Shown here in pieces: positions 20,353-48,580 of a DNA stretch of 64,000 nt. Origin of the DNA: Lepidodermella squamata (taxonomy: Eukaryota; Animalia; Gastrotricha); assembly GCA_047495785.1 (NCBI GenBank), contig JBLDXI010000003.1, positions 3,162,001-3,226,000 on the forward strand. Reading direction: 5' to 3'. Made by a program: the position numbers and the translations under genes. The notes under the pieces were generated by a model, which worked only from the letters and a program-made list of their open reading frames with translations, did not search any database and had not been told where the DNA came from. Positions within the stretch are counted from its first letter, which is position 1, and every line of letters starts with the position of its first letter.

Positions 20353-23300
20353 CTAAGCGCAGAGAAAATCAAGAAAATTGCTATCAACAGCGAAATTATC
20401 GACTCGCAACTGCTGCGACGATTGGAAGAACCGGAAATACGAACTGCTCGTGGCAATTTGCTGCTTTAGCGTCGCCTGGTACTCAGACGACGTCACGCCA
20501 TTGCCGACACCGACGACGAAAATGCGCGTCCAAATCGACCGCAAAGCCGCCAACTCATCGCGCGTCTCCAACACCGACGACTCGCGCCGGTTCGACGTTA
20601 GAAACACAACCCGCCACGGGTTAACGTTCGGCATCGCGTTGAACACATGCCGCCGCGTCGCTTGAAACATACGCGCCAAATCGTCGTTTAACGTGTATTT
20701 AAATGAATCGTAATTAACCGACAGCCAATTTTGCCACTTTGCGACCGAGTCGTTACGTTTGAATGGGTTATTTGAAATATTAACCGCCGTCCAAATAAAT
20801 CGCCGATCCATAGCCACGCCGGTTAGGGTGACTAGACCGATAGATAGCCCGATATCGCCCGTTGAGTTTGATGCGTTTCGTACAATCGATTGCCAATTTT
20901 GCGCGAAATTTACGAGAAAATTCTCGGCGTTATCCGCGTCGGATTTTGTGAAATTTTCAGATTCCGATAAATCTGACACGAAAATCACGTTTATCGACCC
21001 TGAACAGGCGCGGCCGTTCGGTAGCGAGCACTGCGGCATCGCAGTCCAAGCCGCCTGGTCGTTGCACGTCACGCCTGGGTGACCTCGAATAACGTAGCCT
21101 TTTTCGCATTTGTACCAAATCGAGTCGCCAATAACACTCGCCGTATTCAATGGCACGGTGGTATAGGCGACGAGGCCGTTTGTAACCGGTGGTACCAGGC
21201 CGCAGGAAATTGAAAATGTTGACCTAGGTACGCAGCGCGGTTGGGTTGACCACGAGCCGTTAGTGAGGCATTCAATGCGAGTAGGGCCTTTTAGGAGGTA
21301 ACTTGAGTTGCAGGAATACGCGGCGTAACTGCCAATTACACTGTCATTGCCGTCGAAACTCTTCTCGGCTACTACACCATCGGACAACGCAGGGACACCT
21401 CCACACGTTTTCCCTGTAAAAAATTGAAGTAATAAAAGAATTTTATCATGTTTTTATGTTATAAAAATTAAAAATTAAAAAAAATTAAGGAGGAATTTTC
21501 GAAATCAGTTTAGCGAAAATTTCAATTTTCATATTTTTGAAAATTTTTGAAAATTTAGGGTTCCACCACTAAATTAGAGGGTTCAGCCCTAAATTTCGCC
21601 AAAATATGGCTTTTCGAGTTCGAAGTCTTCTTTATAGCTTCTCAAATTTGTGCTATCGCCCCTAATTAGCCGATATAGATATTCAGTATCGATTTTAAAA
21701 ATCAGTGATTTTTTATATCGATACTGCAGCCTTTCAATTTTGTTGAAGTTACTACTCGAACCCGATGGGAAAGGTCATTATTGATCAAGAATGGGAATAG
21801 TCGAAATTGCAAAAAAATCGGAACCTAAATTTCAGTGGTCAAAATCAAGATCCTTTTCAAAATTAGCCTAATTTAAATTTCAGAGACTATAGGGGCATTT
21901 ATTCGAGCGGAATACAAAAATCGCGGAATTTCGATAAATTGAAAAGAGTTTAAAATCGAAAAATTACGGTTTTGAAGTGAAATGCAGATAGGTTGATCAC
22001 TCCAACGGCCGTCTTGTTGGCAAACCACCGAATTCAATTGAGTCGCAAATCCAAACCCATCAGCACATTGGTAAGTCACATTAGTCCCAGGCTTGCTAGG
22101 GCCTCGAAAAGCCTCTGTGAAAACTCCGTTTTGAATAGCTGGCGGCGCCCCGCAACTATCGCCAATGCTGAAACGGCAATAAGGCGCCGGGGTCCAGTCG
22201 CCAGTAGCCTGGCACCGAACTGCTGTGCTACCGGCAGGTTGAAACGCTGAGCCGCATTCGTACCAAACAATGTCATTTACAACACTTGCATTGCCTTTGA
22301 ATGTTTTCATGGTGATATTAGCGTTGCTGACGACGGGCGGTTCGCCGCATCCGCCGTCTTTTTTGATGCAACTCGGCAGGTCGCTCCAGGTGCCGGTGAC
22401 CAGGCACATGACCTGGTCGCTGTCGCTCGTAATTACGTAACCAGTGTGGCAGCGGATTCGGACGTAATCTCCGGGCACGGGATTCGCGTCCAATGGGTAG
22501 GATTGCGAATAAATCACCGAATTCCCAATCGAAGGGGGAGTACTGCATTTTCCGGAGTCTAAAAAGAAAATTGAAACGAATAACAGAAATTTCAAGAAAA
22601 ATTTGAAAAATTGAAATCAAATTTTAATATTAAAAAATGCCCATAAACCAAAAATTTTACGGTCATTTTTAGGACTACAAATTTAATTTCAAGGGTTTAA
22701 AATTTAGGTTCCAGCAATAAATTAGAGCGTCTGGTTATATTATTTCTATTTTTTTCGGCATTTTCTCCACGAAACTCACTGAAGCTCTCTATAATCCTAC
22801 TATTTGTTAATTGAGCTACCTGGTACCGATAGAAAGAAATAGTAGATACCGATACCGATAGATACCGATAGTAGAAATTTTTTCACTATATCGGAAAAAT
22901 CACTGCTTTTTAAAATCGATACTGGAAATCGATATCGGCTACGTGAACTCTTATACTGATATAGATCAATCGGTTATTTCCGATAATCAAAATTTTTGGA
23001 AAATGAGAAAAACTGAAAAGCCATATTTAGAGAAAATCCAGCGTTAGAGCTTCAAATTTAGGACTGGAACCCTCAATTTAGGTGTGCACTTTGCAAGCCC
23101 ATTTTTCTATAATTTTAATTACATTGTTCGCATTTAGGCGGATTCGTCCATAAACCGCTATCAAGGCATGAAATGGTCGCATTGCCCTTGATGGTGAAAC
23201 CAGCCGTGCACGAATAGATGACGTAGTTGCCAACAGTCGGCTGAGGTCCAACGAAATTGTTGTAGATAACCCGTGAATTCGGCACAAGGGGCGGAGCATC

Positions 23301-26300
23301 GCAGTAGACGGGCTTTTTCAGGCAAACAGGCAGAACGGACCAACTGCCATCGGCGGAGCATTCCGTGAAATACGCGGTTGATTGCATTTCATAACCGGGT
23401 AGACAAGCGTAGTAAACTTTATTGCCAGGGTAGGCGAAATTTCCTTCGAATGATCTCTGAGTTATACGGCCATTTTCAATCGCAGGCGCAATGCCACAAG
23501 TCGATACTGGAAAAATTCAGAAAAATTAAAGAAATTTAAAAAATTAAAATTTTAACAATTTTTGAAAAATTCAAGTTAGAATATTTTTAAATTAAAATTT
23601 TTTTTAAATAAAAAAATTCTTACCCGGAACGCATTCTGGGCTTTCGGTCCATTTTCCATCCATAGCGCATTGAACATAGTTATTGATGCGAGATCCGCAT
23701 GATTTTACGTTGAATTTATATCCATTCACGCATTCGTAGATAACGATAGAACCAACTGGGGGCAAATCAGCGTCGAGAATTTCGTAACTCGTGAAAACAA
23801 TAGCCGCGTTTGCAACAAACGGCGCAGGTCCGCAAGACGTCAAAGAATGCGCGGCAGTAGCTTGAAAAATTTAAAATTGAGAAACAATTAAATAAAAAAA
23901 TAGGAAAAATTACAATTGTCAATGCAAGCGGGTAACGGGCTCCAAGTGCCATCTTTTTGACAGGTAATGGACGATTTTTGACCGTTAGCCATCACATAAT
24001 AATTCGAACAACGGTAGATAGCTCGATTTCCTGGCCGGGCTCTATCTGAACCCGAAAGTTCAAAATCAGCAGAAACGAGCACGCCATTGTAAATTCTCGG
24101 TGGCTGAGGGCAAGACTTCAAATCTTAAATTCGAAAAAAATTAAAAATATCTTTTTAAATTTCGAAAATTCTCACCTTCATTTCTGATGCAATCAGGAAT
24201 AACAGTCCATTTTTTATTGACGCATTTGACCTCGGTATCGCCGTCAATACTGTAACCAGCCTCACAGGCGAAAATCATGCGACTGCCCTCGACGGATACG
24301 TTGGCGAACGATTTTTCAACAATAAAACCATGGTCGATAGTCGGCGCCTTCCCGCAGGCCCCAGACCCGATTGGGGCGCAACTCGGCGGGTCGGACCAAG
24401 ACCCGTCAAACGTGCAAATAATGCGGCGAAGGCCGACGGTTTGATAGCCAGAATCGCAAGCAAATTCAGCCCAATCGCCGACTTGAGCGATCGAATTACT
24501 TCTTTTCACGATTTGCCCGTTCAAAATTGTTGGCGTAGGGCCGCAGTCAGATTTTCGAACTGTAGTTCGGCGAGATGTTGTAGCAGTTGAGGTCGAAGTC
24601 GTGGCTGTTGTAGTCGTCTGGGGTAAGGTCGCGCCTTCAGCTAGGCAGATCGGTAATGAAGACCATGACCCATCGGCTTGGCAGGTGGTTGAGTTCGAAC
24701 TCGAGACTATTCGATAGCCCTTCAGGCATCGGAAAACCATGACATCCCCCGCTTCGCTAGGCATTGATTTCGAGCTAGTGCTTGCTAATTCGCTGTTAGG
24801 GACCGACGGGACATTATCACAGGTGACCCGGATGCATTGAGGCGTTGAGCTGTCCCATTTTCCGCTCGCTAAACAGGACATTGTGCCATTTGCGTTGAGG
24901 CTTGAGTTGAATTTGAACCCGGAATCGCAGTTGTAGGAAATTTTTAGGGTATCAGTTTCGAAATCGACTATTTCACCATTCGCTACTTGCGGGGCTTTTC
25001 CACATTTCGTTTTATCAGCCTCTGTAACCAAAATTCGATTAGTAAATCGGAGATTAAAATTGAAGGGTCTAACCTTCAGAAATTAGGGTGCATGTTGGGG
25101 GCGAAGTCCAGCCCGAACTCATGCACATGGAGGCTCTTTTGTTGGTTATCGCATTGTTTTCGTTGCTTTCAGCGAAAATGTAGCCCAATGAACATTCGTA
25201 AAAAACCTGCAAAAAATTGGCAAAATTAATAAAATTGCTTTGGAAATTAATCTCTATCAAATCCAATTTGAATCGCAAATTTTGGAGCATTCAATATAAT
25301 TTCTAACTAAAATAATTAAAAAATTGATAGTGACCCTCAACTCATTCCGAATTTTCAGCCATTTTGCGAACTTTTGAGGCCCATTTTATCCTAATATTTT
25401 GCTGCCAATACCCACCTTTAATTTTATAGACCTATACCCTACACCCTTGAGCATGATAACATATGAATTTTGCCCAAATTTGTTTCCCAATCTGTTTCCT
25501 TACTTTCGTCCCATTTTAAAATCGTTTCTAATACCTATTCTATATTATTTTGCTCGAAATTATTTTCTAATCTAAGCTAACCGTAGAACCGATAGTTGTA
25601 GACAGTTCAGTATTATCGTCTTTCACGAGCACACCATTCGGTGTAAGAGGAGGCGGGCCACACGAGAAAGGGGTCGTTGTGGCCGCACCAGTTGTTGAAG
25701 CGGTTTTAGCAGTCGAAGCTTGATCAGATCCACCATTACCCGATTTCCCACCATCACTCTGCGGTCCTTTTGTAATCTCAATATTTCTATTTCCGCCGCC
25801 ACTATTGCTGTTCCCATTATTAGTGTCATCAGATTTTTTCGTGGTTTTCGGAAGCGTCGTAGTAGTAGTAGTAGTGGTCGTTGCAGTTGTAGTAGATGCT
25901 GCTGGAAAAACGTTTAAGTATTAATTTTTGCCTAATTGGTTTTTTTCATCCACTCAACACGTGAAACGTTTCAAAAACATAAACAAGAATGTCAGAAAAC
26001 GATTGGACGGCAATAAGTCACTCTCTCTCTCTCTCTCTTTACCAGAATTCGTCGAACTTCGAGTTTCGAATTTCGAACTACCCGAAGTAGTTTCGCTGGC
26101 AGGGATACTAGTAGACGTGCTAGGGTCTATAAGCACGAAACATTGACAATAAATCAATCACAGATGTCGAGATAAAAAATTAAGGAGGCATTAATATTAA
26201 TGCCGCCGGGTATCGCTTTGATCCCAGTTACCGCGTCCCTAGCAACACGCATTTTCTAGATTCTACCATCGATATGTTTAGCTTTTCGATATTTTGATAA

Positions 26301-28836
26301 GGAATATCCTTAGAATAGACGATAAGACGACAAACCTGTTCGAAGGTTATAGCTAACTGTAGGCTTTGTGCCTTGCTGGTCCCAGCAGACAGGTGGATCC
26401 AGGTTCCACTGGCCGACATCTCCGCAAATTATCCCGCTGTAATTGGTGAGTAACGTAGCGCCATTGTTGCACTGATAACGAACCATCGAGCCAGGCATGC
26501 TGACAACTTCGAACGACTTGAAAGCCACAATCGCATTTTTAACCACAGGAGCCTCACCGCAAGATTCTAAATAATTAATTTCAAAATTTAGATTCAAAGC
26601 GAAAAATCAGTAATGACTCACGTGGACACCCTGGAATTGCAGTCCATGATTCGATCATCGTACAAAGGGCAACAGCAGACCCATTCAGGGCATATCCACT
26701 GAAAAAAAGTTGTTAATTAATTAAATTTAATTAAATTAATTAAAAAAGTAAAATTCATACTTATTGCATGAATATGTGATAGTATCGCCCGGTACGCTTT
26801 TGTTTCCCTCGAATGTTTGCGAATAAATATAGCCATTGACAATTTTCGGTGCCGGGCCGCATGACCTCGATAAAATGTCCCGATTCGGCTGGCAAACCGG
26901 CGGGAAAGTCCACACGCCACCCGCCTGGCAAGCGACCGTATTTTTCCCAGCAATGTCGTAGCCTGTTTTACACGCATACGTCACCGTGTCGCCCTCTTTA
27001 GACATCGCATCGGCCGCGAAGGATCGGTCGATGATTGTTGCTGAGTTGATGACAGGTGCTGGGCCGCAGGATCCGCTGGAAAATGTCACTGTTGTAGCGG
27101 CCTGGGTTGAGGTGACTATTGTCGAGTCGCCTGGGTTACTGGGTGTCAGTGGCTGGGTGACAGCGCCGCCAGCTGGGGTTCCAACGCTCGTAATCACCGG
27201 CTGGGTCGATGTCGTAGTAGTACTAGTCGTAGTACTCGCTAAAATTGATAATTGAAAATTCGATGAAAAAAAATGAAAAATTTAATACTTGATTCTGTTG
27301 TTGTTGTTATTGAGACACATCTCGGAGTGGTGGACCAGTTAAGGGTGAGTAGACAAACAACACGATCCGGGCTGCCATCGGCGAAAGCGTAGCCGTCTTT
27401 ACAGGTGAAAGTTATCATATCACCAGCTCGGCTCATGACTGCGTACGATTTCGAAACAGCAACCGCGTTTTCAACAACAGGATACTGAACTCCGCAAGAT
27501 CCTAGGAATGAACATTCGGATTTAGAATTTCAATCAAATTTTGAAAAATTCAGCCAAATTTTAATGACGGGTCCCACATTGGTTCCGTGTTTTGAAATTT
27601 AGTTCCGCTTCAGTCATTTTGGGTTTACTAAATTCTCCACGTGATATTCTGCCTTAATTTTTGGTTAAAATTTTTATGATTATTTTTTGAAAATTTTGAA
27701 ATAAAATAAAAGGCTTATTATCGTAAATTTTGTTACGGTGAAAAAACGACTTGAAAAAAATATTTTCAAAAAAAATAATGCATCACCTAAAAAAGACCAG
27801 ATAATATTTTGAATTTTTTTTGCGATTTCAGATTTTTTGTAAATAACCCGATAATTAATTAGGTCACTTTCCAGGTTCAATTCGTTTCTATTATTCGAGC
27901 AATATGGTGAATTAAATTCCTCATAATAAGGCATAATTGTGGTAATTACCTAGGCAAAGAGGAAGCGGCGAAAATGTAGCATTCGCTTGGCACGAGACGT
28001 ACATAGACCCAGCCAGGATAAAGCCTTCCTTGCACGCGTACATGATAAAATCACCCGAGAAAAATAACCCATTCGCCGAGGATACAACAACCGTGGCATG
28101 CGGAACTTCTGGCAACGGACCACAACTGATATAAGCCTCACCTAAAATATTTAAAAAAATTAATTAAAAATTTCGAAATATTAATTAACTTACTGTCGGG
28201 TGAAATTTTTGCTAATAGCGCTGGAATTCTTGCAACAGGTTTCGCTACAATTTCAGTGCCACTTCGCAGTTCTTTGATCTGCCTGATATCGGCGAGTCCA
28301 AGGAAACCGATGTATGTTGGGTAATTTTCGGGGTCACGAATATTGCTCCGATAGGGCACGACATTATTCGCCTCGGCAATGTCGTAAAAATCGTAAAATA
28401 GCCCGAAAATATTGCCCTTTTCAGCTCGAAATGGCTTCCCGACTGAAAGCAGCGGCAGTTGGACGGTTTGCCAGGTTTTCGCCGAATTAGACGCATTGAC
28501 ATCGACCCGCATGTAGCTCAACATGCGGAACGAGCCCGGGCGACTAGCAATCGGCTCTAGCACGGCTAAATTGAAGTATTTAGCCGCCGAACTGGCGAAA
28601 TTGTTGATAAAAGTGACGGATTGAATGACGCCTGAGCACGGTGCGGTCATCCATGGGTAGATGTGGAGGAGACTGCTGGTTTCTGGGTAGAAATCCACGC
28701 TCGACTCAGGCGAGGCGACGCCAACTTTACACCCTGCACCGCCGGATCTAGAGACAGCGGCCGGTGTTGGGACGATTTGACTTGAAATTACGGGGATTAA
28801 TTGAAAAATTATCACTGCAGGTAATATAGTCATCAT
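20353..28836 (-). CDS. Secreted protein: N-terminal beta-rich domain, about 19 sushi/CCP repeats with Thr/Ser-rich linkers, C-terminal VWA domain
   Basis: Signal peptide MMTILPAVIIFQLIPVISS. Repeated CGxxPxxxNG..YxC..GY...C...GxWS..PxC across multiple exons. VWA with VIFVSDLSES (DxSxS) and IFVVGVG. No transmembrane segment seen. Confidence 0.88.
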
Positions 28837-31887: not shown

Positions 31888-34784
31888 TCACGAGTCCAAT
31901 GGAATGACTTGAGATCCGCCGGGTAGACGTTCAAAATCCGGAAATTCATGCGCTCCATCCGCCATATCAGCATCCGTCTGGTTCGAGCCCAGCTGAATTA
32001 GATAATTATACAAATCAATCGGCAACTTCGCGCCCCGTTTCAGCAAAACCTCCGCAGTCTCAAGGTGATCAGTGGTTTGGAAACAAAAACACAGCGCAGA
32101 TAGCGCGGTTGGTTCGTCGCCACTTCGAGCTGAAATATCGGCGCCTTTTTCCAGCAAGTACTCAACAACCCGGGTCGACCCGGACGAGGCGGCTTCCATC
32201 AAAGGCGTCCGATCCCGATAACCTCGGCAATTTACGTCGAATCGCGCGGTTTCGACTAAATAACGGACGAAAGGTAGTTGGTTCGATTGAGCAGCCCAGT
32301 GGAGTAAGTTTCTCCCATCATCGGTCGTCGCCTCAATAGATTTCGGGTCTCTCTTCAATAAGATATCTAAAATATCCAGATTTCCGGATCTACACGCGTA
32401 GTGAACTGCTGTAAAGCCGTTGTAGCTTTCGTTAGTTCGAGTGCGAATATTAGCGCCTTTTTCCAAGAGGTAGTCAATCGCATCTTTCTGCCCGCCGCCT
32501 GCAGCGTACATCAACGGCGTCGCGTCCGAACGACCCTGAGTGTCGACATTTTGCCCGTATTTTTCGATGAGGAGTTTCAGAACTTCGATTTCGCCAGATC
32601 TAGCGGCGTAGCGAAGAGCGACATCGCCAACTCCGTCTCGAGCTTCGATTAGGTTCGCATCCCGGGCAATTAAGGCTTCGATTACGGCCACGTGACCTCG
32701 ATCGGCCGCCATGTGGATTGCCATTCGTTTACATCTTTCCACCAAATAATTCCAGCTCCTATACAAAAATTGGAAAAAATTATTCAAAATTATTTAAAAT
32801 TAAAATTTTAAAATTGAAAATTGAAAATGAATTAAAAATTTAGATCAAATATTACTATTAATATTAACTAAAAATTCAATTTTAAAAAGAGTTAAAAAAT
32901 TCAGGAAAAAATAGAAATGCATTCTCGTTTTAAATTTTCCGAATTCAATTTTTTCTCAAATTTTCTAAAAATAAAAGAAATTCTTATCGCATCGAACCTA
33001 GCAGATATATCGGCGCCTTTTGACATGAGGTATTCGACTACACGGACATGTCCCTTCGATGCCGCTATCATCAAAGCCGTTCTCGCCCCGTCATCGCCCT
33101 GCCGTTCATCCACATTCATTCCAAACTCTTCAATCAGCCGTTTGACAACGCCTAGATGACCGATTTCCGCCGCCATTCGTAACGCTCGCATGTGGTCGAT
33201 CTCGCCGGGTAGTAACGATGAGCCACTGATCGCCATTATATAATCCATCGAATCGAAGTCGCTGTTATGAAATGCCTCGTTAAAGCCCAACATGCCAGAT
33301 GAGGAGATCGTGCTTCCAGGGTACGACCGGCAATTCATAAAAGGGCAAAGAACTTCGAGCACATCGATTGGTGTTAAATTTTCGCCAAAAATAATCCGTT
33401 TCAGCGAGGCAAACAGAGGCAAACGACTGAAATCGGCCGCTATTTGCAGCAAATTCCTCATTTCGTTTTCGTTCAACCGCGGCAGGAGAAGATGAACAAT
33501 TTGGGAATGACCGAAAATTGCGGCGACTTGGGCGATTTCGAACGTGATTTTCGCGCCTTTTTCCATCAGATAATGCACCACTTCTAACCTGCCAGCCATT
33601 GCAGCGAGAAATAGAGGTGTCCGCTGTTCGAAACCAGCTTGATCAATATCGATCTCAAACTTTTCAATAAGAAATTGAAGAATTTCTAGGTGGCCGAATG
33701 CGGCTGAATAGTGGATAGGCGAATAACCATCCATGTCAGTTACGTCTTTCAGCGAGCCATCGTGCTCTAACAAGAGTTTGACCTCATTTAAATGACCATA
33801 TTTCGCGGCGGCGTGAATGGCAGTAAAGCCACGATCGTCCGACCCACTAATTAAATGTGGGTCAGCGCCGTGTTTTAGAAGACACGTAATCGCATCGCTT
33901 CTACCGTCTCTTGCAGCCAAAATAAGGGCAGATCGATGATTGTAACCAGGCAAATCGATAATTTCTCGGCCAAATCGTGAAATTAGCAGTTCGATGACGT
34001 GAACTTGGCCGGACATCGCGGTAAAATGAAATGCTGTGTTATCCTGATAGCCCTTGTCATAGGCTAGACTGGAATCCAGGGTTAGAAGAAGCTCGAGTAA
34101 AATCACATCGCCTGTTTCAGCGGCAGCGTGAAATGCCAGCATCTCGATGTCCGACGCAACAGCTTCACCGTTTTCATCCTCCAAGGCAGCTCGAACTCGA
34201 TGAATCGCTGCGAGTTATAATTAACAAAAATTTAAGAAAAATCCAATAAAAAATTCATACCTAATTCGGGCCGAAGTTTGTTGCTCGTTGCCTTAGACAC
34301 GAATGAGTCCATTTTTTCAAGCCTCTGTCGATATCGCCGAATTTCACTCCTCGACGTTGGCAACTGCCGAGACATCCAATGACAGCCGGCATATCTCGAT
34401 TGAGCGCTGGCTGGCTGATCTCTCGAAATTTGAAGCTTCCTAGCGTCGTAGACCCTAGCTTCATCTTTTTGCCATTCAACATGAGCATAATATTGAGCCT
34501 TATAAGTTTCATCATCTTCACCAGCGGCTTCCTCACTCTCGGTAGAACCAGTTAAATCCTGGTGATGAATGCCACATCGCAAAATGTACCAGGCTAGATG
34601 TTCGGTTGGATCAGAGCAATTTTCGTCGAGTTTCAAGAATCCTAAAAATTTCCGAAAAATTATTGTTTTCATTTTATTAAAATTATTTACCTAGATTATC
34701 AGGAGGGAATACGTTAACGATGTGAGACTTAATTTTGCTGTTCACATTGTCGATTTCTTGCTGATCGTCCTCAATTTGATGCAT
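31888..34784 (-). CDS. Ankyrin-repeat protein (about 17-18 repeats), about 4 exons
   Basis: ATG at 34784 (MHQIEDDQQEID..). Repeated TAxHxAA..G / TPLMxAA..G..VVxYLLEKGA in the 427-aa and 299-aa ORFs. Confidence 0.88.
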
Positions 34785-38720: not shown

Positions 38721-38792
38721 AGGTCCCATCGAGATTTGAACTCGAGTCGCAGGATTCAGAGTCCTGAGTGCTTACCGCTACACCATGGGACC
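38721..38792 (-). tRNA. trnQ-CTG: tRNA-Gln (anticodon CTG)
   Basis: GGTCCCATGGTGTAGCGGTAAGCACTCAGGACTCTGAATCCTGCGACTCGAGTTCAAATCTCGATGGGACCT: 7-bp acceptor stem, CAGGA/TCCTG anticodon stem, TTCAAAT T-loop, and an oligo-T Pol III terminator just downstream. Confidence 0.96.
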
Positions 38793-39900: not shown

Positions 39901-42600
39901 TCATCGCAAAGCTTCACGGTTCGTCACAAAGTAACCGTATCTCTGAAACAGCTTTGGCGCAAATACAACAATCAAGTTGATTAGTGCCATCCACATTGTG
40001 CTGATGGACAGGACGTAGTAGAACATCTCCGTTTTTGTGTAAAAAATTGCGTTCAATGCTATTAATGGCAATGCTGAGAGGAGGGTGCCTCGGTAGGCGC
40101 GGATCACTTCTCGGAGATCACTAACGACCGTCCCCCTTCCCTAAATGAATAATCAAATAGTGAATAGGTTATGACTAATAGATAAGATGAGTTATACCTG
40201 CTTCAGCTTGCTCATAACGTAAACCGCCCTAACTATTATGCAGAAATGAAGGACATACATTGCTCCAATGAGTATCAGGCCTCTTGTTGAGTTCACTTTT
40301 TTGCAGGCGAACCACAATCGAAGGGTGACACAGTCACTGCTATCGACAATCGTCTCAGTTTCCACTGTCGTTACCGCAGGATTAATCTGAACCCAAGTGA
40401 ATACTAAGAATCCGAAAATGACAGAGACAACAACGGATCCAATAAAAGCCAATCTGAAGCAGGCTGCGATTGCGTTTTCACCGATTTTGAAGCGGCCTCT
40501 AGGGAAGATCCTCTTATTCCGCTCAATTGAGTTTTGCATGACGTAGGCGAGCTCAACCTTGGCGTAGAAAGCATGCCATATGAAAGTTTTACCGACGAAA
40601 AGTAAGATGTAGGCCATTGAGCAGGTGTCACCTAAATTGTAAGCTACGCCATGTGGAAGGCAAAAGACATGGCTTAGCATAACGATGTTTCCAGTTAGGA
40701 TCAAATTATTGAGCGTAGGTGCCGACAGCCAGATTTTCCTGTTCTCCTTTTTCGATCTGAACCGCTGGAGAACCAGAAAGACTAATGACGCTGCGCATAA
40801 TACGGCGGCTACTCCTGTCACGGAAAAGGCACGTCTTAAAACCCAATTAGGTAGATGAGAAAACAACTACCTTTCAACGCGATTAACAACTGGAGGCGAC
40901 GAAATGTTGGAATGAAATGTTTAATTAGCTTAATTCCGTCTTTAGGCGGCCGCCCATCCGCCGTAAGCCAGGAGATGTTGCCGAAATTAGCAGAGACTTT
41001 GAGAACCGAATTGTTGACGGATGGATCATATAGCGCGACAGGAACCAATTGAATCGATGAATTACCGTCAAACCTTCCTTGGAAAATCCCGATGGGAGCA
41101 AGACCCCGAATGTTGTCGTCGGATTCTTCCTCGAATCCATAATCACCTTGAAGGCCTGATAGGTTCACGTCATAGAGGCTTTGACGCTGTATTTGGAGTA
41201 TCTGGTCTCCGTGGGAGCGAAACCTTTCCCCGGACATGACCCAGTCTGAAAGTGTCTCGTTACCTAAAGAAAATATCTTCGTAAAGGTTTGAGCTTGGGT
41301 GTGGAAAAATTACGGGTATTTAACAGCGCTTCAGTGGAGTTGAGCCAATAAGCAGCGAATAACGCCATGTCATACAGCCTGTATCGAGCTTTCCAATGGA
41401 AGTGAGATTCGGGGTCTAGCACTGCAGCACGTAGTTCATCGTCCAAAGCTTGACTTGAAAGACCGGTAGAATCTTCCGCGTACCCGAAAAGACTGGCCTT
41501 GGATGTATCGCCGAAGAAAAATGTGCATTGTAGCACCTTCAAACAAAAGTTAACTTTCGTCCAATATACTTATACAATATACTAATTACCTGTATCAGCA
41601 TCTCCTCCGAGCACCAAGAGTAACGCGTGGAGTCATTGGCGTTGAAAACGAAAGGCATCTGAATCAAAATCACCCTCGACGGGCCGTAAAGATTGAAGCG
41701 ATGAAACCAGCACGCCACCAAAGCTGGGGTGTTGCTGTTAACGACAATAATTCGTGGATCGATGCTGGCCAAATCTTCAACAGCCGACGCGATCTGGCTT
41801 TCCTCTGACGGCTGGCCGGAGATGAACGGAATTTTGAATATACCCGTCATTGTCATACTCTTGTTTTCCATTCGAGACAACATATCTGTTTCCAGCTATA
41901 AATGGTTTTCAAATAATAAAAAGGAAAATTTCAAGGCGGTATTACTCTATTGAAGTAAGGCGTAATTTCGGAAATCACTGATAACTTTTTCCACCCGTTG
42001 GAATAGCAAAATTCGACCAATGTTGCGTATTGCAGTGCTGGGGCGGCATGAGTGACATAAAATGATTGATACTTGACCCTATCCATTTGAAAATCCGGAG
42101 CGATTGTTAGGGTAGTGGCTCCGGTTACGTTGTAATGGTGGATTATTTGACCGGTGTAGATGTGGCCGGAACAGAAGGGGCCAAGGAGCAATGGAAACCT
42201 CGGCATTGAGCTGTCATCTTCGTTCAACCTAGAGACGATTTCACTCACCGTTACTGCACGAGTACACTAAAAGCAAACGGTTGTGTAAAAGGCATTAAGG
42301 ACAGGAATTTATTACCCTGTCATCGAAGGCTTCAATGAATATTTCGTATTCAGGCAATAGGTTATGCATAGCTCGAATTCGGTCCAAGGCTATCTTCATC
42401 GCGGCAACTCCGGTAGCTTTAAAAGGCAGCAAAGGACCAGCATAGTTTATCGACATCATGATAGTTATGTTTTTTGGTCGTTGATTGCTCTCGTTTCGAG
42501 ACGCCGTTATGAAGGGCGGTAGCGGATCATCTAACAGCATCTGTTTGCTCCAGATGGAAGTTGAGAAAAAACAGAATGTTGCTAGGGAAGCTAATCTCAT
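39901..42600 (-). CDS. Divergent class C GPCR, GABA-B-receptor-like (Venus flytrap plus 7TM)
   Basis: Signal peptide; AAMKIALDRI..LLPEYEI; LLLGPFCS; GWKKLSVI; DPRIIVV; YDM; LSGLQGDYGF. Seven hydrophobic segments with SAPTLNNLILTG (TM2), C..YILLFVG..FYAK (TM3) and IVVFAPK (TM7). No cysteine-rich domain. C-terminus uncertain. Confidence 0.85.
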
Positions 42601-42954
42601 ACTGAAGCGTTCCTTCAGCAGTTAGTCCAAGTTAAAAGCTGTGGGCTTAATCAACTGAGTAAACTTCAAATATCAATCGCGTGCTGATGACTTCAGGGCA
42701 ATTACATCAATTTAATTGAAGTAACCTGACGTTTGCCGCAGACTGTTTAAGGTTTAAAAAGTGATCCATAAAATTCTCGTTCCAATACTTGATCAAAATA
42801 TAGGTATATTTAATCCTGATGTTGATTATTCAATCGTGAAGATACAACGAAAATTTTATTAATAATTAAAGAATGCAGGATTCAATCATTCCACAGCTTG
42901 CTGTCACAAAAAAGGGGTATCAAATTTCGTCCAATGATCCAATTGGGTGACGTC

Positions 42955-45574
42955 TCATGACAACCCAAGAATGACGTTCGCCGCGTAGTAATGAATGACA
43001 GCTAACATCACTGCGGCGAGGATGAACGCGAAAATATCTGCGAGACGAGCAATGCTGATGCTGAAATTCTTTCCACAGCAGCAAAGATTAACTCGAGCAC
43101 GCCCAACGCCCGGTAAGTGGCAAAACGCGCAGACGATCATGTCATAGACTGTGCCTTGATTAAGAAGTGAGCTAATCATCATGAAAATAGAAATTTCGTT
43201 GTAGCTTACATCCCCCGGTGAAGAGTTGAAGCAGCAGAATGTAGTCTGATAGCAGAATTCGCTGTGAAGACTTTGGCACCTGAGCCATAACTTGGCTTTG
43301 GGCAACGGTCAAAGCCAGTAAAATAGTTACTGAAAAGGATAAGTCGATTAATTTCCCTGGTTGAACCTGAAGACTTACCAGCAAAGGTTGATCGCTCAGG
43401 AATATGAGGCGGCAACAAAAAGGCACTAATTACCATCAAAATTAGCAGCAAAGTCGGTCCAATCAAGTTGTAAGCCTTATAACAAATTTCTCATCTGTGA
43501 TAGAGGAAATATTGCAACTTACGACATAATCAGGCTTGCGAGTGAATCCGAGGAAGAACGTCAGCGTGCTAACGTTACTTTTCATCGCAGTTGACAGAAG
43601 AAAGTCTTTTTTCGGCGTCAACTTAGGTTGGAGAATCCATTCGCTCATGTCAGAAATCGACGTGGGCTGCTCGATTTCCAGAAGTCCAAACTGAACCAAA
43701 AGGGAAGTTCTTTGCAAGGAGAACTCGAACTTGCAAACTTGTTCGTCGAAGGGAAATTTAATCTGAGGGAAAAACATTAGCCATGGTAAGGTTTGTTATC
43801 CAAAATCCAACCAGGTTCATTTCACATTTAGACCGGAAGACTCCAACTCTAGTCCAGTAGAAATTGATGACTCTGAAAGGGGTTGTAGGACGAATTACTA
43901 CTGTCAAGCTGTCTCCATAAGGATCTGCCTTCATGTAGACGTCAGACGGGGACGATCTGAACAGAACCGTTGGCATCCAAACGTCTTCCATACTTGCTAC
44001 GAAAACTCGTTCCGATGCCGATAAATCGCTAGCGGTAGACTCGGCATCACACGTATCGACATACCACTGCAGGAAGAGCGTGGCGCTGACTTTGATTGTT
44101 TCTTCAACGGCGTCGATACCGAGAAAATTGTCTACGATAAAACTTGCGTGGACCTCCGTTGGCTCGTTGTTATTAGGTGGAGCACTGATGTTAGATCCAA
44201 AGTCTTTGCAAGCCGCCATCAGGTCAGCGGCGAAGAATTTCGGGATCGCACTTTCGGCGGGTAGATCTGGGACTGGAACTTTACCAGGGACTGGTGTTGT
44301 TGTCGTATATGCAAAGGCTGTAGTCGGACGGGTTCTTCTTGCAGTTGTCGTTACAGTTGTAGGCTTAGTCGTCGTAGTGACTGTAGTCGTCGTTGGGGTA
44401 GTTGTAGTTGGAGTCGTCGTCGTAGTTTTTGTTGGAGTCGTCGTACTAGTCGTTGTCGTAGTAGGGGTAGTTGTGGTTTCAGGGGTTGTCGTCGTCGTTG
44501 TTGTGGGAGTCGTAGTCGTAGTTGTAGAAGTAGTCGTAGTCGTGGTCGAAGTGCTTGTCGAAGTTGTTGTCGCTTCAGAGAGTCCAAAAAAACTCAACGA
44601 ATTCACATGAATTCCCGCATAAAATCCTTGGGTAAAACCCCCAAGTCCAACTGTGGTTCTATTTTCGGCGATCAGCTCATTAAGGCCGTCGGTGGATACG
44701 CTCTCGAAACAAACGAAAGTCGTTGTCTCATTGCTGTCTTTTTTCGAAGCAGTTATAGATACTGTCAGCAAGTCATTGACGCTTTGAACGATTACTAGAA
44801 TGCCTTTTGAGACTTGGTCACTCGACATAGAATCGCAAGTACTATCGGCTTCGTTGAGATTACCGTCGAACACAGGAAATTCATCCGCTAATGCTTTGCT
44901 GAAAGAGGCAACAGGGCGCTGATCGTCGTACCATATTGCCATCCATGTTACAAAACCTTGGAACTGGTCTAATTTGTCATTATCTGTCAAATTGTTGCAT
45001 TTTAGGTCATTTCATTTTTTTAATTCTTCACGTACCCAAGTAAGCAGTCAGGGAATTCCTGCTAGCGACAAAGAGACCAATAGCTGGAGCTCCTCTGGGT
45101 GCTCGCCCTGCTGCTGTTTTCGATCCTGAAAATACTGCCTCAACTCGCCATGCATTGACGTTGATCGGAAGATTCTGAAAGTTCGGGAAGTAACAGTAAG
45201 AGATGGAACTAAGAATCACTCGGAGTTACATACATTTTTGCTATAAACACTTCCCTCTTGAAAAGATTCTTCAGCTGTCAGCTGAATCCTTCCACTTGGT
45301 GTTACCTGTGCTGTGCCATTGAGGATCCAGCCATCTAGATTAGACAAAATGCTTGAAAATTAGAACCTTTGATGCTATGTCTTCGCTTGCCTATTGATTT
45401 CGGATCGGTCACGTCAAACGACAGCTCTTCGTAAATTTGAATGGTCGGAAGATTCTCAGGTAGCGGCAGAAATTCAGTGTGAATTCTCAAAGGGTCGAAG
45501 TCTTCCAGAAAATGACCGCCAAATACAGCCTCAAGCGAACAAAGAAATACAGTTCCAATCAAACGCAAAATCAT
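42955..45574 (-). CDS. Cys-loop ligand-gated ion channel subunit with an N-terminal L-type-lectin-like domain and a Thr-rich mucin stalk
   Basis: The spliced frame gives signal peptide, lectin-like domain, poly-Thr/Pro, then PTEVHASF..LGIDAVEET..LFLQW..VWMPTV, Cys-loop CEMNL|IKFPFDEQVC (C-x13-C), SEWIL, TRKP, M1 (INLIGPTLLL), PER-M2, VPKSS, M3, a short loop and M4 (RLADIFAFIL). Confidence 0.88.
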
Positions 45575-45844
45575 ATTTCGAACTCGTCATTAATTGTGTC
45601 GATTCTCGCGGCTTTTAAACACATCGGCGCAACACTGGAGTACCGGAAGCGATGAAAGCCAATTTCGTACCTGTGCTATATCAGTGCTCATTTAACCAGA
45701 CTGAAATGTTTGTTCCGCCTATGCCTAGGTGCGATCGAGTTTTACTTTTGAAAAAACTGACTCATTGTTAGCCTAGTCAATTGCCCTAGACAAAGATCAT
45801 GAATCACGTGATGACAAACACAAGCATGCGAAGTTCAGTTTTTT

Positions 45845-46724: not shown

Positions 46725-48580
46725 TCACTCAGTTCGGCTTCGACTAAGCGATGAACTCGGAGTCTTCGGATCTAACGGTCTAGCTTCTGCCAATCCACAC
46801 ATTTCCATCAAGTTAGCCGGTTCGATATCCAAAATAATAAGAGACAATTTTCCACTGATTTGACTTGGCTGAATCTATAATCAAAAAGTGATTGAACGCG
46901 AAAAGAAAATTAGAAAATTACTTTGAAGTAAACTTTGACTTTCTCGAACAGGTAGCGCCATTTCAGTTCGCATCGCTCACTCGGCGTTTTGGCAACGAGG
47001 TCCTTAGCCGAATTTTCGAGAATTTTACGAGCCATTCGATCATTGAGTTGAAGCCAACGCAAAGTCCCGGAATCATCGGATAAATCGATCGACATTCGAT
47101 ACATCCAAACCGGCTCGATTCGGCGCGGTTCACCCCCGTCCTCATCCACCTCAACTTGAGCACCGGAGTACGTGACACGGCATCGCGAATCCGGACATTG
47201 GCGAAGTTCGTTTTCGGTATTTTCTTCAGCCACGTTCAAAAATCGGCCACAATTACCACAAGCGAGGCGGGCGAAGTCAGAAACTGGTTCGACTATCGGG
47301 AAACGAGTGATGTAACCAAACATGAAACCAGCCACCGTAATTCGCCCCATAGATTGACGCGTTAATTCGGCTGAGGTGAAAAGTGCATTCGCTGATGTCC
47401 TTTGCTGATTGAATTCATTCATCTTGGCTTGGCAGCTCAGATAAACTTGGCGAGCCTGTTCAGCATTGAACTGCTCTTTGATACTAGCAACTGCAGATAA
47501 CAATAGCATTAATCTAAGAACACAAGAAATATAATCAAGATTACTGTCAATCTCTCCGGCTTCTTCATCGTTGTTTCCGAAAACTTCTGCCGCGTCGTTT
47601 TGAACAAGGCGATTGAGACGTTCAGCATCAGGAACTGCAGGATTAGGAATCGCAATGGTGCGAACGCTCGTCTGGCCTACGAAATTCTTTCGGTATTTCT
47701 CGTCAAACTTGATTTGAATGTCCGTGAAGAAAACGACTTCATTCTTGCGCCAAGTATGAGCAAAATGAATAAGCTCAGGTTCCCAAAACGTGATGACTAA
47801 AATTTGCCGGAAATAAATTTAGAAAATGAGACAAGATAATGAAACCTACGAAAATCAGTGCAAGAGCTATCTAAAATATGGACGTCGCAGCAGCTGATGT
47901 CCCTGCCGTCTTTTCGCGACTTCAGGTGGCGTTCACTTCCGACAGATTTAACAACGGCTAACAGGTTCACGTGTTCATTCTCGATTTTACGGCCCATTCT
48001 CATGACTTGGTTCAACGTGTAAAAATCACTTGAGTCACGAACAGGTTGGCACATCAACCAGGCAAGGTTGTGAGGCCTAGGATTTGCTGCAGGGCAAATC
48101 ATGCGAATAGAGCCGGCAGACGCTGACAAGGTTAGTTCGATTAGGCTGGGTGTCGGTGGTGCGTAGCGCTCTTCTTCACCTGGAGATTTCTTAGTGACAA
48201 CGCGAGCTCCAGTTACACGAATAATATCCCCGATGTGGAAAGTGTGCGAGATTTCATCGGTATCACTCCAAACAGACAAGTTAATAAAATCTGATATGCT
48301 GTCTCGGATTGTGCAATTGAAAACACATCGGGCTGCTGATTGTTTGGCACCTGACAAAACAGTGGATGATGAAAAAAATAACGCAATAATGCCTTCAAGT
48401 ACCAAGGAAAAAAGATGGAAGTGCCTGTGGTTGCTTTTCCGGTGTGCCCCCTGCGGATGAGCCAGATAGGCAGCGAACTGAACTTTTCGCTATCACCAAC
48501 GCATCTAGAAGAAATCCTGTGCGGTGCGGGACAAGATCTTTGATCTGGCACAACTGACTGTTCGCAGAATTGAATGTCAT
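46725..48580 (-). CDS. MEIOB: Meiosis-specific OB-fold ssDNA-binding protein
   Basis: FNCTIRDSISDFINLSVW..FHIGD..EERYAPPTPS; HVNLLAVVKSVG; CGNC..C; IDLSDDSGTL..ELKWRYLFEKVKVYFK match MEIOB motifs. Exons are phase-compatible; stop at 46725-46727. Confidence 0.92.

Follow-up and report, generated by a model that had tools for sequence, protein, structure and literature searches.

A predicted nicotinic-like channel subunit with a large N-terminal head on a mucin-like stalk in the gastrotrich Lepidodermella squamata

The layout of animal Cys-loop receptors has been described as fixed, with a signal peptide followed by the ligand-binding domain and four helices (PMC549065). Extra beta-rich domains that follow the signal peptide and precede the outer domain are known from prokaryotic pentameric channels, among them DeCLIC and fusions that carry a PBP-I, a Cache, or an MCP-N domain (PMC9897478, PMC549065). 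The N-terminal region of DeCLIC consists of two jelly-roll lobes, and N-terminal domains of pentameric channels are stated to be 'not found in eukaryotic relatives' (PMC9897478). Here we describe a gene in a stretch of 64,000 nucleotides (nt) from the gastrotrich Lepidodermella squamata (assembly GCA_047495785.1, contig JBLDXI010000003.1, positions 3,162,001 to 3,226,000; hereafter the window, to which all coordinates refer). The gene lies on the minus strand at 45574-42955 and is predicted to encode a cation-type Cys-loop subunit, preceded by a head of ~260 amino acids (aa) and a mucin-like stalk of 94 aa. A preliminary description, made from the sequence alone, had read the head as an L-type-lectin-like domain and the whole as a candidate contact- or glycan-sensing channel. 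In overall architecture, the subunit resembles only the prokaryotic members with N-terminal domains.

Channels of the DeCLIC type come from bacteria or archaea and have no Cys-loop cysteines, whereas the present gene is spliced, eukaryotic, and has kept the Cys-loop. The lobes of DeCLIC pack directly on the outer domain without a mucin stalk; here the 94-aa stalk separates head and channel, and the head has no sequence relation to the N-terminal domains of the DeCLIC type. The nicotinic acetylcholine receptor (nAChR) family, and its non-alpha gamma and delta chains in particular, shares with the predicted protein a signal peptide, an outer beta-sandwich domain with an N-terminal helix, and a Cys-loop of 13 residues with FPFD. 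Also shared are an Arg before the first of four transmembrane helices (M1 to M4), the M1 Pro, Glu-Arg before M2, and Thr, Leu, and Val at the 6', 9', and 13' positions of M2. Compared to this family, the gastrotrich subunit has ~350 extra residues (head and stalk) ahead of the outer domain, and its M3-M4 loop measures ~20-25 aa instead of 70 to >150, a length nearer to that of bacterial channels. It also lacks the loop-C Cys pair and the Trp after the Cys-loop, and its sequence is very divergent. The L-type lectins ERGIC-53, VIP36, and VIPL (Pfam PF03388, Lectin_leg-like) may be compared to the head by a domain length of ~230 aa and by a weak profile match of one exon at the expected position. 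Unlike this subunit, they are cargo receptors of the endoplasmic reticulum and Golgi, with a coiled-coil stalk and a single transmembrane helix.

The gene is intact and transcribed. Its coding region of 2253 nt is spread over eight exons and encodes 750 aa with no frame break, from an ATG at 45574 to a TGA stop codon at 42955-42957; in-frame stops lie five codons upstream of the ATG. Exon 1 (45574-45391) has the start codon and encodes the signal peptide plus the initial ~42 aa of the head, exon 2 (45334-45234) head residues 62-95 (GWILNGTAQ... SVYSKN), and exon 3 (45174-45036) head residues 96-141 (AWRVEAVF..., GAPAIGLFV). Exon 4 (44983-43812, 1172 nt) carries the C-terminal half of the head (aa 143-278), the entire stalk (aa 279-372), and the helix and strands of the outer domain as far as the first Cys-loop cysteine, and it is followed by exons 5 (43762-43523), 6 (43475-43379), 7 (43329-43210), and 8 (43154-42955). 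The seven introns measure 56, 59, 52, 49, 47, 49, and 55 nt; the splice sites are GC-AG in intron 1 and GT-AG in all others. Exon 4 forms one open frame at 43758-44990, and its 410 stop-free codons in DNA of 42% GC are far above chance expectation. Because the C-terminal half of the head, the stalk, and most of the outer domain share one exon, the fusion of head, stalk, and channel is not a misjoin, and the splice from exon 3 to exon 4 (44983 to 45036), which ties the N-terminal head exons to this large exon, is present in an RNA contig. The single-exon claim of the preliminary description holds to this extent. All peptide strings quoted there were found in the spliced minus-strand frame, and its end points are exactly those of the coding region, ATG and stop codon included.

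Contigs of RNA run X1 cover 42822-45596, with zero depth on both sides and continuous depth through exon 4, and support five of the seven introns. Introns 3 (44984-45035, 52 nt), 4 (43763-43811), and 7 (43155-43209, 55 nt) are skipped in direct joints, while introns 1 and 2 are supported by loose contig ends that join 45334 to 45391 (exons 1 and 2) and 45234 to 45174 (exons 2 and 3; loose end GGAAGATT). Intron 1 (45390-45335, 56 nt) has a GC donor (GCAAGC...CTAG). Loose contig ends fall at 45337 and 45391, and GC-AG is the sole placement of this intron that gives a known splice-site class. Two other gene models were discarded: a 32-nt GT-AG version of intron 1 is ruled out by the loose ends, and at the GGGGG run ahead of M3, an intron of 38 nt or a frameshift is excluded by the 55-nt intron seen in RNA at 43209-43155. 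An AATAAA at 42855-42860 on the minus strand, ~95 nt past the stop codon, is a probable polyadenylation signal, and RNA coverage fades in the bin 42822-42932. One RNA contig of 331 nt (43299-43522) has two joints reported as lying on opposite strands, 43379 with 43522 and 43299 with 43439. Two of these four end points are exon boundaries, and the odd joints are probably an assembly artefact.

The encoded protein begins with a hydrophobic N-terminus, the predicted signal peptide (aa 1-19, 45518-45574). The head follows (aa 20-278, 44574-45517 including introns 1-3); it is net acidic and contains Cys191, Cys233, and three N-glycosylation sequons. In the stalk (aa 279-372, 44292-44573), 66 of the 94 residues (70%) are Thr, and with 9 Pro and 5 Ser these three amino acids account for 80 of the 94, the composition of a mucin-like Pro/Thr/Ser domain. 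Its DNA contains imperfect repeats of 6, 12, 24, and 69 nt. The lower stalk includes an R-R-T-R motif (aa 357-360, 44328-44339 on the minus strand), followed by Pro, and the stalk leads through a Pro-rich linker to the probable N-terminal helix of the outer domain. Dense O-glycosylation and an extended shape are expected of the stalk. The order proposed in the preliminary description (signal peptide, head, Thr/Pro tract, and complete Cys-loop subunit) is thus borne out, with a head of ~260 aa and a stalk of 94 aa. Other contigs of both sequencing runs agree with the stalk over just ~32 nt (44509-44540) and depart from it on either side; near-identical Thr-coding repeats are evidently present at further loci.

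By its sequence, the C-terminal part of 380 residues is a member of the pentameric ligand-gated channel superfamily, of cation type. The outer, ligand-binding-type domain (aa 373-612, 43523-44291) spans intron 4, which splits the Cys-loop (C528-C542, 43733-43826) at a joint seen in RNA. Between the two cysteines there are 13 residues with an FPFDEQ core (with flanks, EMNLIKFPFDEQV). The transmembrane domain (aa 613-750, 42958-43475) contains M1 to M4, with hydropathy peaks at ~613-639, 642-662, 669-694, and 722-750. Pfam Neur_chan_LBD (PF02931) matched the exon-4 part with 20.5 bits (E 3.6e-4, profile positions 17-100) and exon 5 with 13.9 bits (profile positions 132-146), two collinear matches on separate exons; Neur_chan_memb was not detected on the short exon pieces. 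In phmmer searches of the PDB, the exon-4 part matched the Torpedo nAChR delta chain best (chain residues 16-133), followed by GLIC, and exon 5 matched Torpedo gamma and delta best (residues 134-212), again collinear with the exon-4 matches. M1 is preceded by Arg-Lys-Pro and contains the Pro noted above, and M2 is preceded by Pro-Glu-Arg. These collinear matches, the Cys-loop, the Arg-Lys-Pro before M1, the M1 Pro, and the four transmembrane segments support the earlier reading of a complete Cys-loop subunit.

The cation assignment follows from the Glu-Arg directly before M2, since cation channels of the superfamily carry Glu-[Arg/Lys] at this place and anion channels Ala-[Arg/Lys] (PMC549065). 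In the PDB alignment, the subunit has no Trp a few residues past the Cys-loop, a Cys pair ahead of the last strand is likewise missing, and the same is true of Torpedo gamma and delta. We take these two places to be the loop-B and loop-C positions of the agonist site. With the alpha-type Trp and Cys pair missing, a classical principal agonist face is unlikely, and so is a role as a classical transmitter-binding subunit. The M3-M4 loop is too short for a long intracellular domain of the metazoan type; a long loop is usual in animal members and is not required for membership of the superfamily. Within this loop, by M4, there are three consecutive cysteines (Cys709-711; 43030-43090, aa 700-720), a possible palmitoylation cluster.

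The identity of the head is more difficult to establish. Its sequence is distributed over four exons, and the profile, PDB, and ESM Atlas searches and the AlphaFold predictions were made on exon pieces. By eye, its motif order appears collinear with that of ERGIC-53, including a Cys pair ~40 residues apart and a G-x-x-x-T-x-G...H-x-x-S-L-S-F ending, a resemblance that serves as a lead only. Exon 2 (33 aa) is the only piece with a lectin-family profile match: its residues 2-32 match Lectin_leg-like at profile positions 24-53 of 230, with 12.4 bits and an E value of 0.1. From this match to the stalk there are 184 residues, compared to 177 profile positions left. A phmmer search with the 137-aa exon-4 half of the head against 1.84 billion representative proteins found no true relative. 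Two matches, to a Calx-beta repeat protein and to a repetitive helical protein, were rejected as spurious because their scores sum 5-8 weak repeat matches. The lack of relatives is partly a matter of sampling: the window's own protein is absent as well, and its genome and close kin are evidently outside the search set. Word-based searches with this half of the head and with the outer domain, which covered proteins of 225-717 aa, gave no match, and a metagenome scan with exon 4 found no relative.

ERGIC-53 requires Asp121 and Asn156 for sugar and calcium binding, and mutation of Asp121 abolishes binding (PMC3912170). When the head is aligned to ERGIC-53 by eye, Pro125 (in GAPAIG) falls at the position of Asp121 and Asp162 at that of Asn156. 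Binding of mannose in the canonical calcium-dependent way is therefore unlikely. The preliminary description had noted that the sugar-binding Asp seems absent, and this agrees with the sequence as far as a by-eye alignment can tell. Its lectin identity fared less clearly: one weak PF03388 match at a fitting place in the profile speaks for it, whereas the other pieces are blank and the lectin is unproven. We consider that the head probably has a ConA/L-type-lectin-like beta sandwich.

A second run (X2), the library type of which is not on record, was treated as DNA because its contigs run unspliced through introns and past both gene ends. Between X2 and the window, the fixed differences in the folded parts are four in number and all synonymous, and one X2 allele of exon 3 has one synonymous change and one Ile-to-Phe change. 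The stalk shows two non-synonymous differences (T339M and K327T) and a 9-nt in-frame insertion behind 44385, and intron 2 has seven differences in 59 nt in one X2 allele. This pattern, drawn from small numbers of differences, suggests that the domains are constrained and that the stalk tolerates changes in length.

We give about an even chance to a combined reading in which the protein is a cation-type, nicotinic-like subunit, the head is probably ConA/L-type-lectin-like without the canonical Asp, and the most likely role of the head is recognition or anchoring. Five subunits would assemble into a cation channel with as many as five heads. O-glycosylated tracts extend ~0.25 nm per residue, and the stalks would hold the heads roughly 20 nm above an outer domain of 6 nm, where the head would most likely tie the channel to an extracellular glycoconjugate or a matrix partner. 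As a flexible stalk cannot relay allosteric motion, any influence of the head on gating would have to be exerted by tension, by multivalent cross-linking, or by folding back. The head might accordingly be an anchor or recognition module of a channel that is gated by another cue, a sensor of force or cross-linking, or, bent back onto the outer domain, a tethered modulator. For the sensor there is a design analogy in yeast Wsc1 and Mid2 and platelet GPIb-alpha, in which a binding head sits on a stiff O-glycosylated, Ser/Thr-rich rod able to carry tension. These proteins signal via a single transmembrane helix or a juxtamembrane domain and have no ion channel, and the likeness is one of design only. 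Because the hallmarks of an agonist site are missing, the recognition or anchoring role is favoured, and gating by tension is possible. A bolder version is rather improbable in our estimate. It places this gene in a lineage-specific family of ionotropic surface or glycan receptors, the mucin-stalked, lectin-fold heads of which would catch a glycoconjugate from outside (from food, a microbe, a mate, cuticle, or matrix) and open a pentameric cation channel by tension or multivalent cross-linking.

A number of observations weigh against the combined reading. The lone lectin match has half the PF03388 gathering score of 24, and no Pfam match past the HMMER filters came from the exon 1 piece, from exon 3, or from seven tiles taken from the exon-4 half of the head. 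No lectin turned up when three head pieces were searched against PDB sequences. In the ESM Atlas, the same number of head pieces scored 0.62-0.85, under the useful range, with H-type-lectin or lipocalin-like leads. Single-sequence AlphaFold models reached a mean confidence (predicted local distance difference test, pLDDT) of 36.6 for the exon-4 half of the head and 36.4 for the exon-4 part of the outer domain, values at which a fold search on the models is not meaningful. The mannose-binding residues of ERGIC-53 are, by eye, not conserved. On the channel side, each Neur_chan_LBD match taken singly is below the gathering score of 26, the exon pieces having been scored separately. As for the gene model, RNA gives no clean joint for introns 5 and 6, although one contig stops right at their donor boundaries, and both are based on GT-AG ends, reading frame, and continuity of the channel motifs; the RNA contigs are short, and no single one spans from head to channel. 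The head could instead be a novel or different beta-rich domain with a protein or other non-sugar partner, its lectin-like motifs being coincidental. We regard this as a possible explanation, though a less probable one than a lectin-like fold. It gains from the absence of relatives among the 1.84 billion representatives and from a profile signal confined to 33 aa while all other pieces are blank; it is countered by the fact that this one match is to the very family predicted from the motif order, at a fitting place in the profile and with an agreeing remaining length.

The role of the head can also be questioned without regard to its fold. Gating may be conventional, by a small molecule, protons, or ions acting at the subunit's own or a partner's outer domain, with head and stalk serving only for placement, that is for clustering, anchoring in cuticle or matrix, apical sorting, or shielding. 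A flexible mucin stalk of 94 aa would be poor at passing on a conformational change, the outer domain is complete and constrained, and the best PDB matches are non-alpha nicotinic chains, which act as partner subunits. Extracellular scaffolds are known to cluster nicotinic receptors in nematodes. The absent agonist-site hallmarks speak against such conventional gating. We consider this account, with pure anchoring by head and stalk, possible and nearly as likely as the favoured one. Much less probable is that head and stalk are cleaved off after synthesis, for example at RRTR, to leave an ordinary mature channel and a head that is a pro-domain or a shed soluble protein. R-x-x-R is the minimal convertase motif, and a Pro after the last Arg, as found here, disfavours cleavage of the furin type; the motif also lies within a tract expected to be heavily O-glycosylated. 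Finally, an artefact joining two genes, or a decaying copy, could be suspected only from the general divergence of the sequence and from the Pfam matches below their gathering scores. It is essentially excluded by the continuity of head, stalk, and outer domain in one exon, by the joint of exons 3 and 4 in RNA, and by 750 codons without a frame break, in which the fixed differences in the folded parts are all synonymous.

No paralogues of the channel gene were found within the window. The gaps to both neighbouring genes are ~270-355 nt, and with channel-gene introns of 47-59 nt they indicate a very compact genome. The next gene downstream (41931-42600, minus strand) begins 355 nt past the channel stop codon and has a signal-peptide-like N-terminus; no Pfam match was found for it, and run X1 gives it no RNA coverage. 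Directly upstream of the channel region, at 46910-48405 (minus strand), there are exons with a MEIOB N-terminal oligonucleotide/oligosaccharide-binding (OB) fold (E 1e-19) and RPA-like OB domains. Further minus-strand features are two large ankyrin-repeat exons at 31888-34184 (Pfam Ank_2, E 1e-43 to 1e-51) and a transfer RNA gene at 38721-38792, which gave the window's single Rfam match (64.8 bits). Several Sushi-repeat exons at 20353-27197 (minus strand), one with a weak match to the hormone-receptor domain (HRM), may encode the ectodomain of an adhesion- or secretin-type receptor.

The preliminary description would be refuted if the architecture were already a described family. In the full-text literature, with few subscription journals covered, we found no lectin-bearing or otherwise N-terminally extended pentameric channel of an animal, in agreement with the statement that such domains are absent from eukaryotic relatives (PMC9897478). 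The rule that N-terminal domains belong to prokaryotic members only is broken by an animal subunit that is expressed and has a large head on a mucin stalk. If the reading of gating by a glycoconjugate is true, the subunit would represent the first pentameric channel in eukaryotes to have a sensory N-terminal domain, and its gating mode would be new to the superfamily. The compact subunit with its short loop may suit structural work, and it provides a concrete object for asking whether pentameric channels couple to macromolecular or mechanical cues instead of small transmitters.

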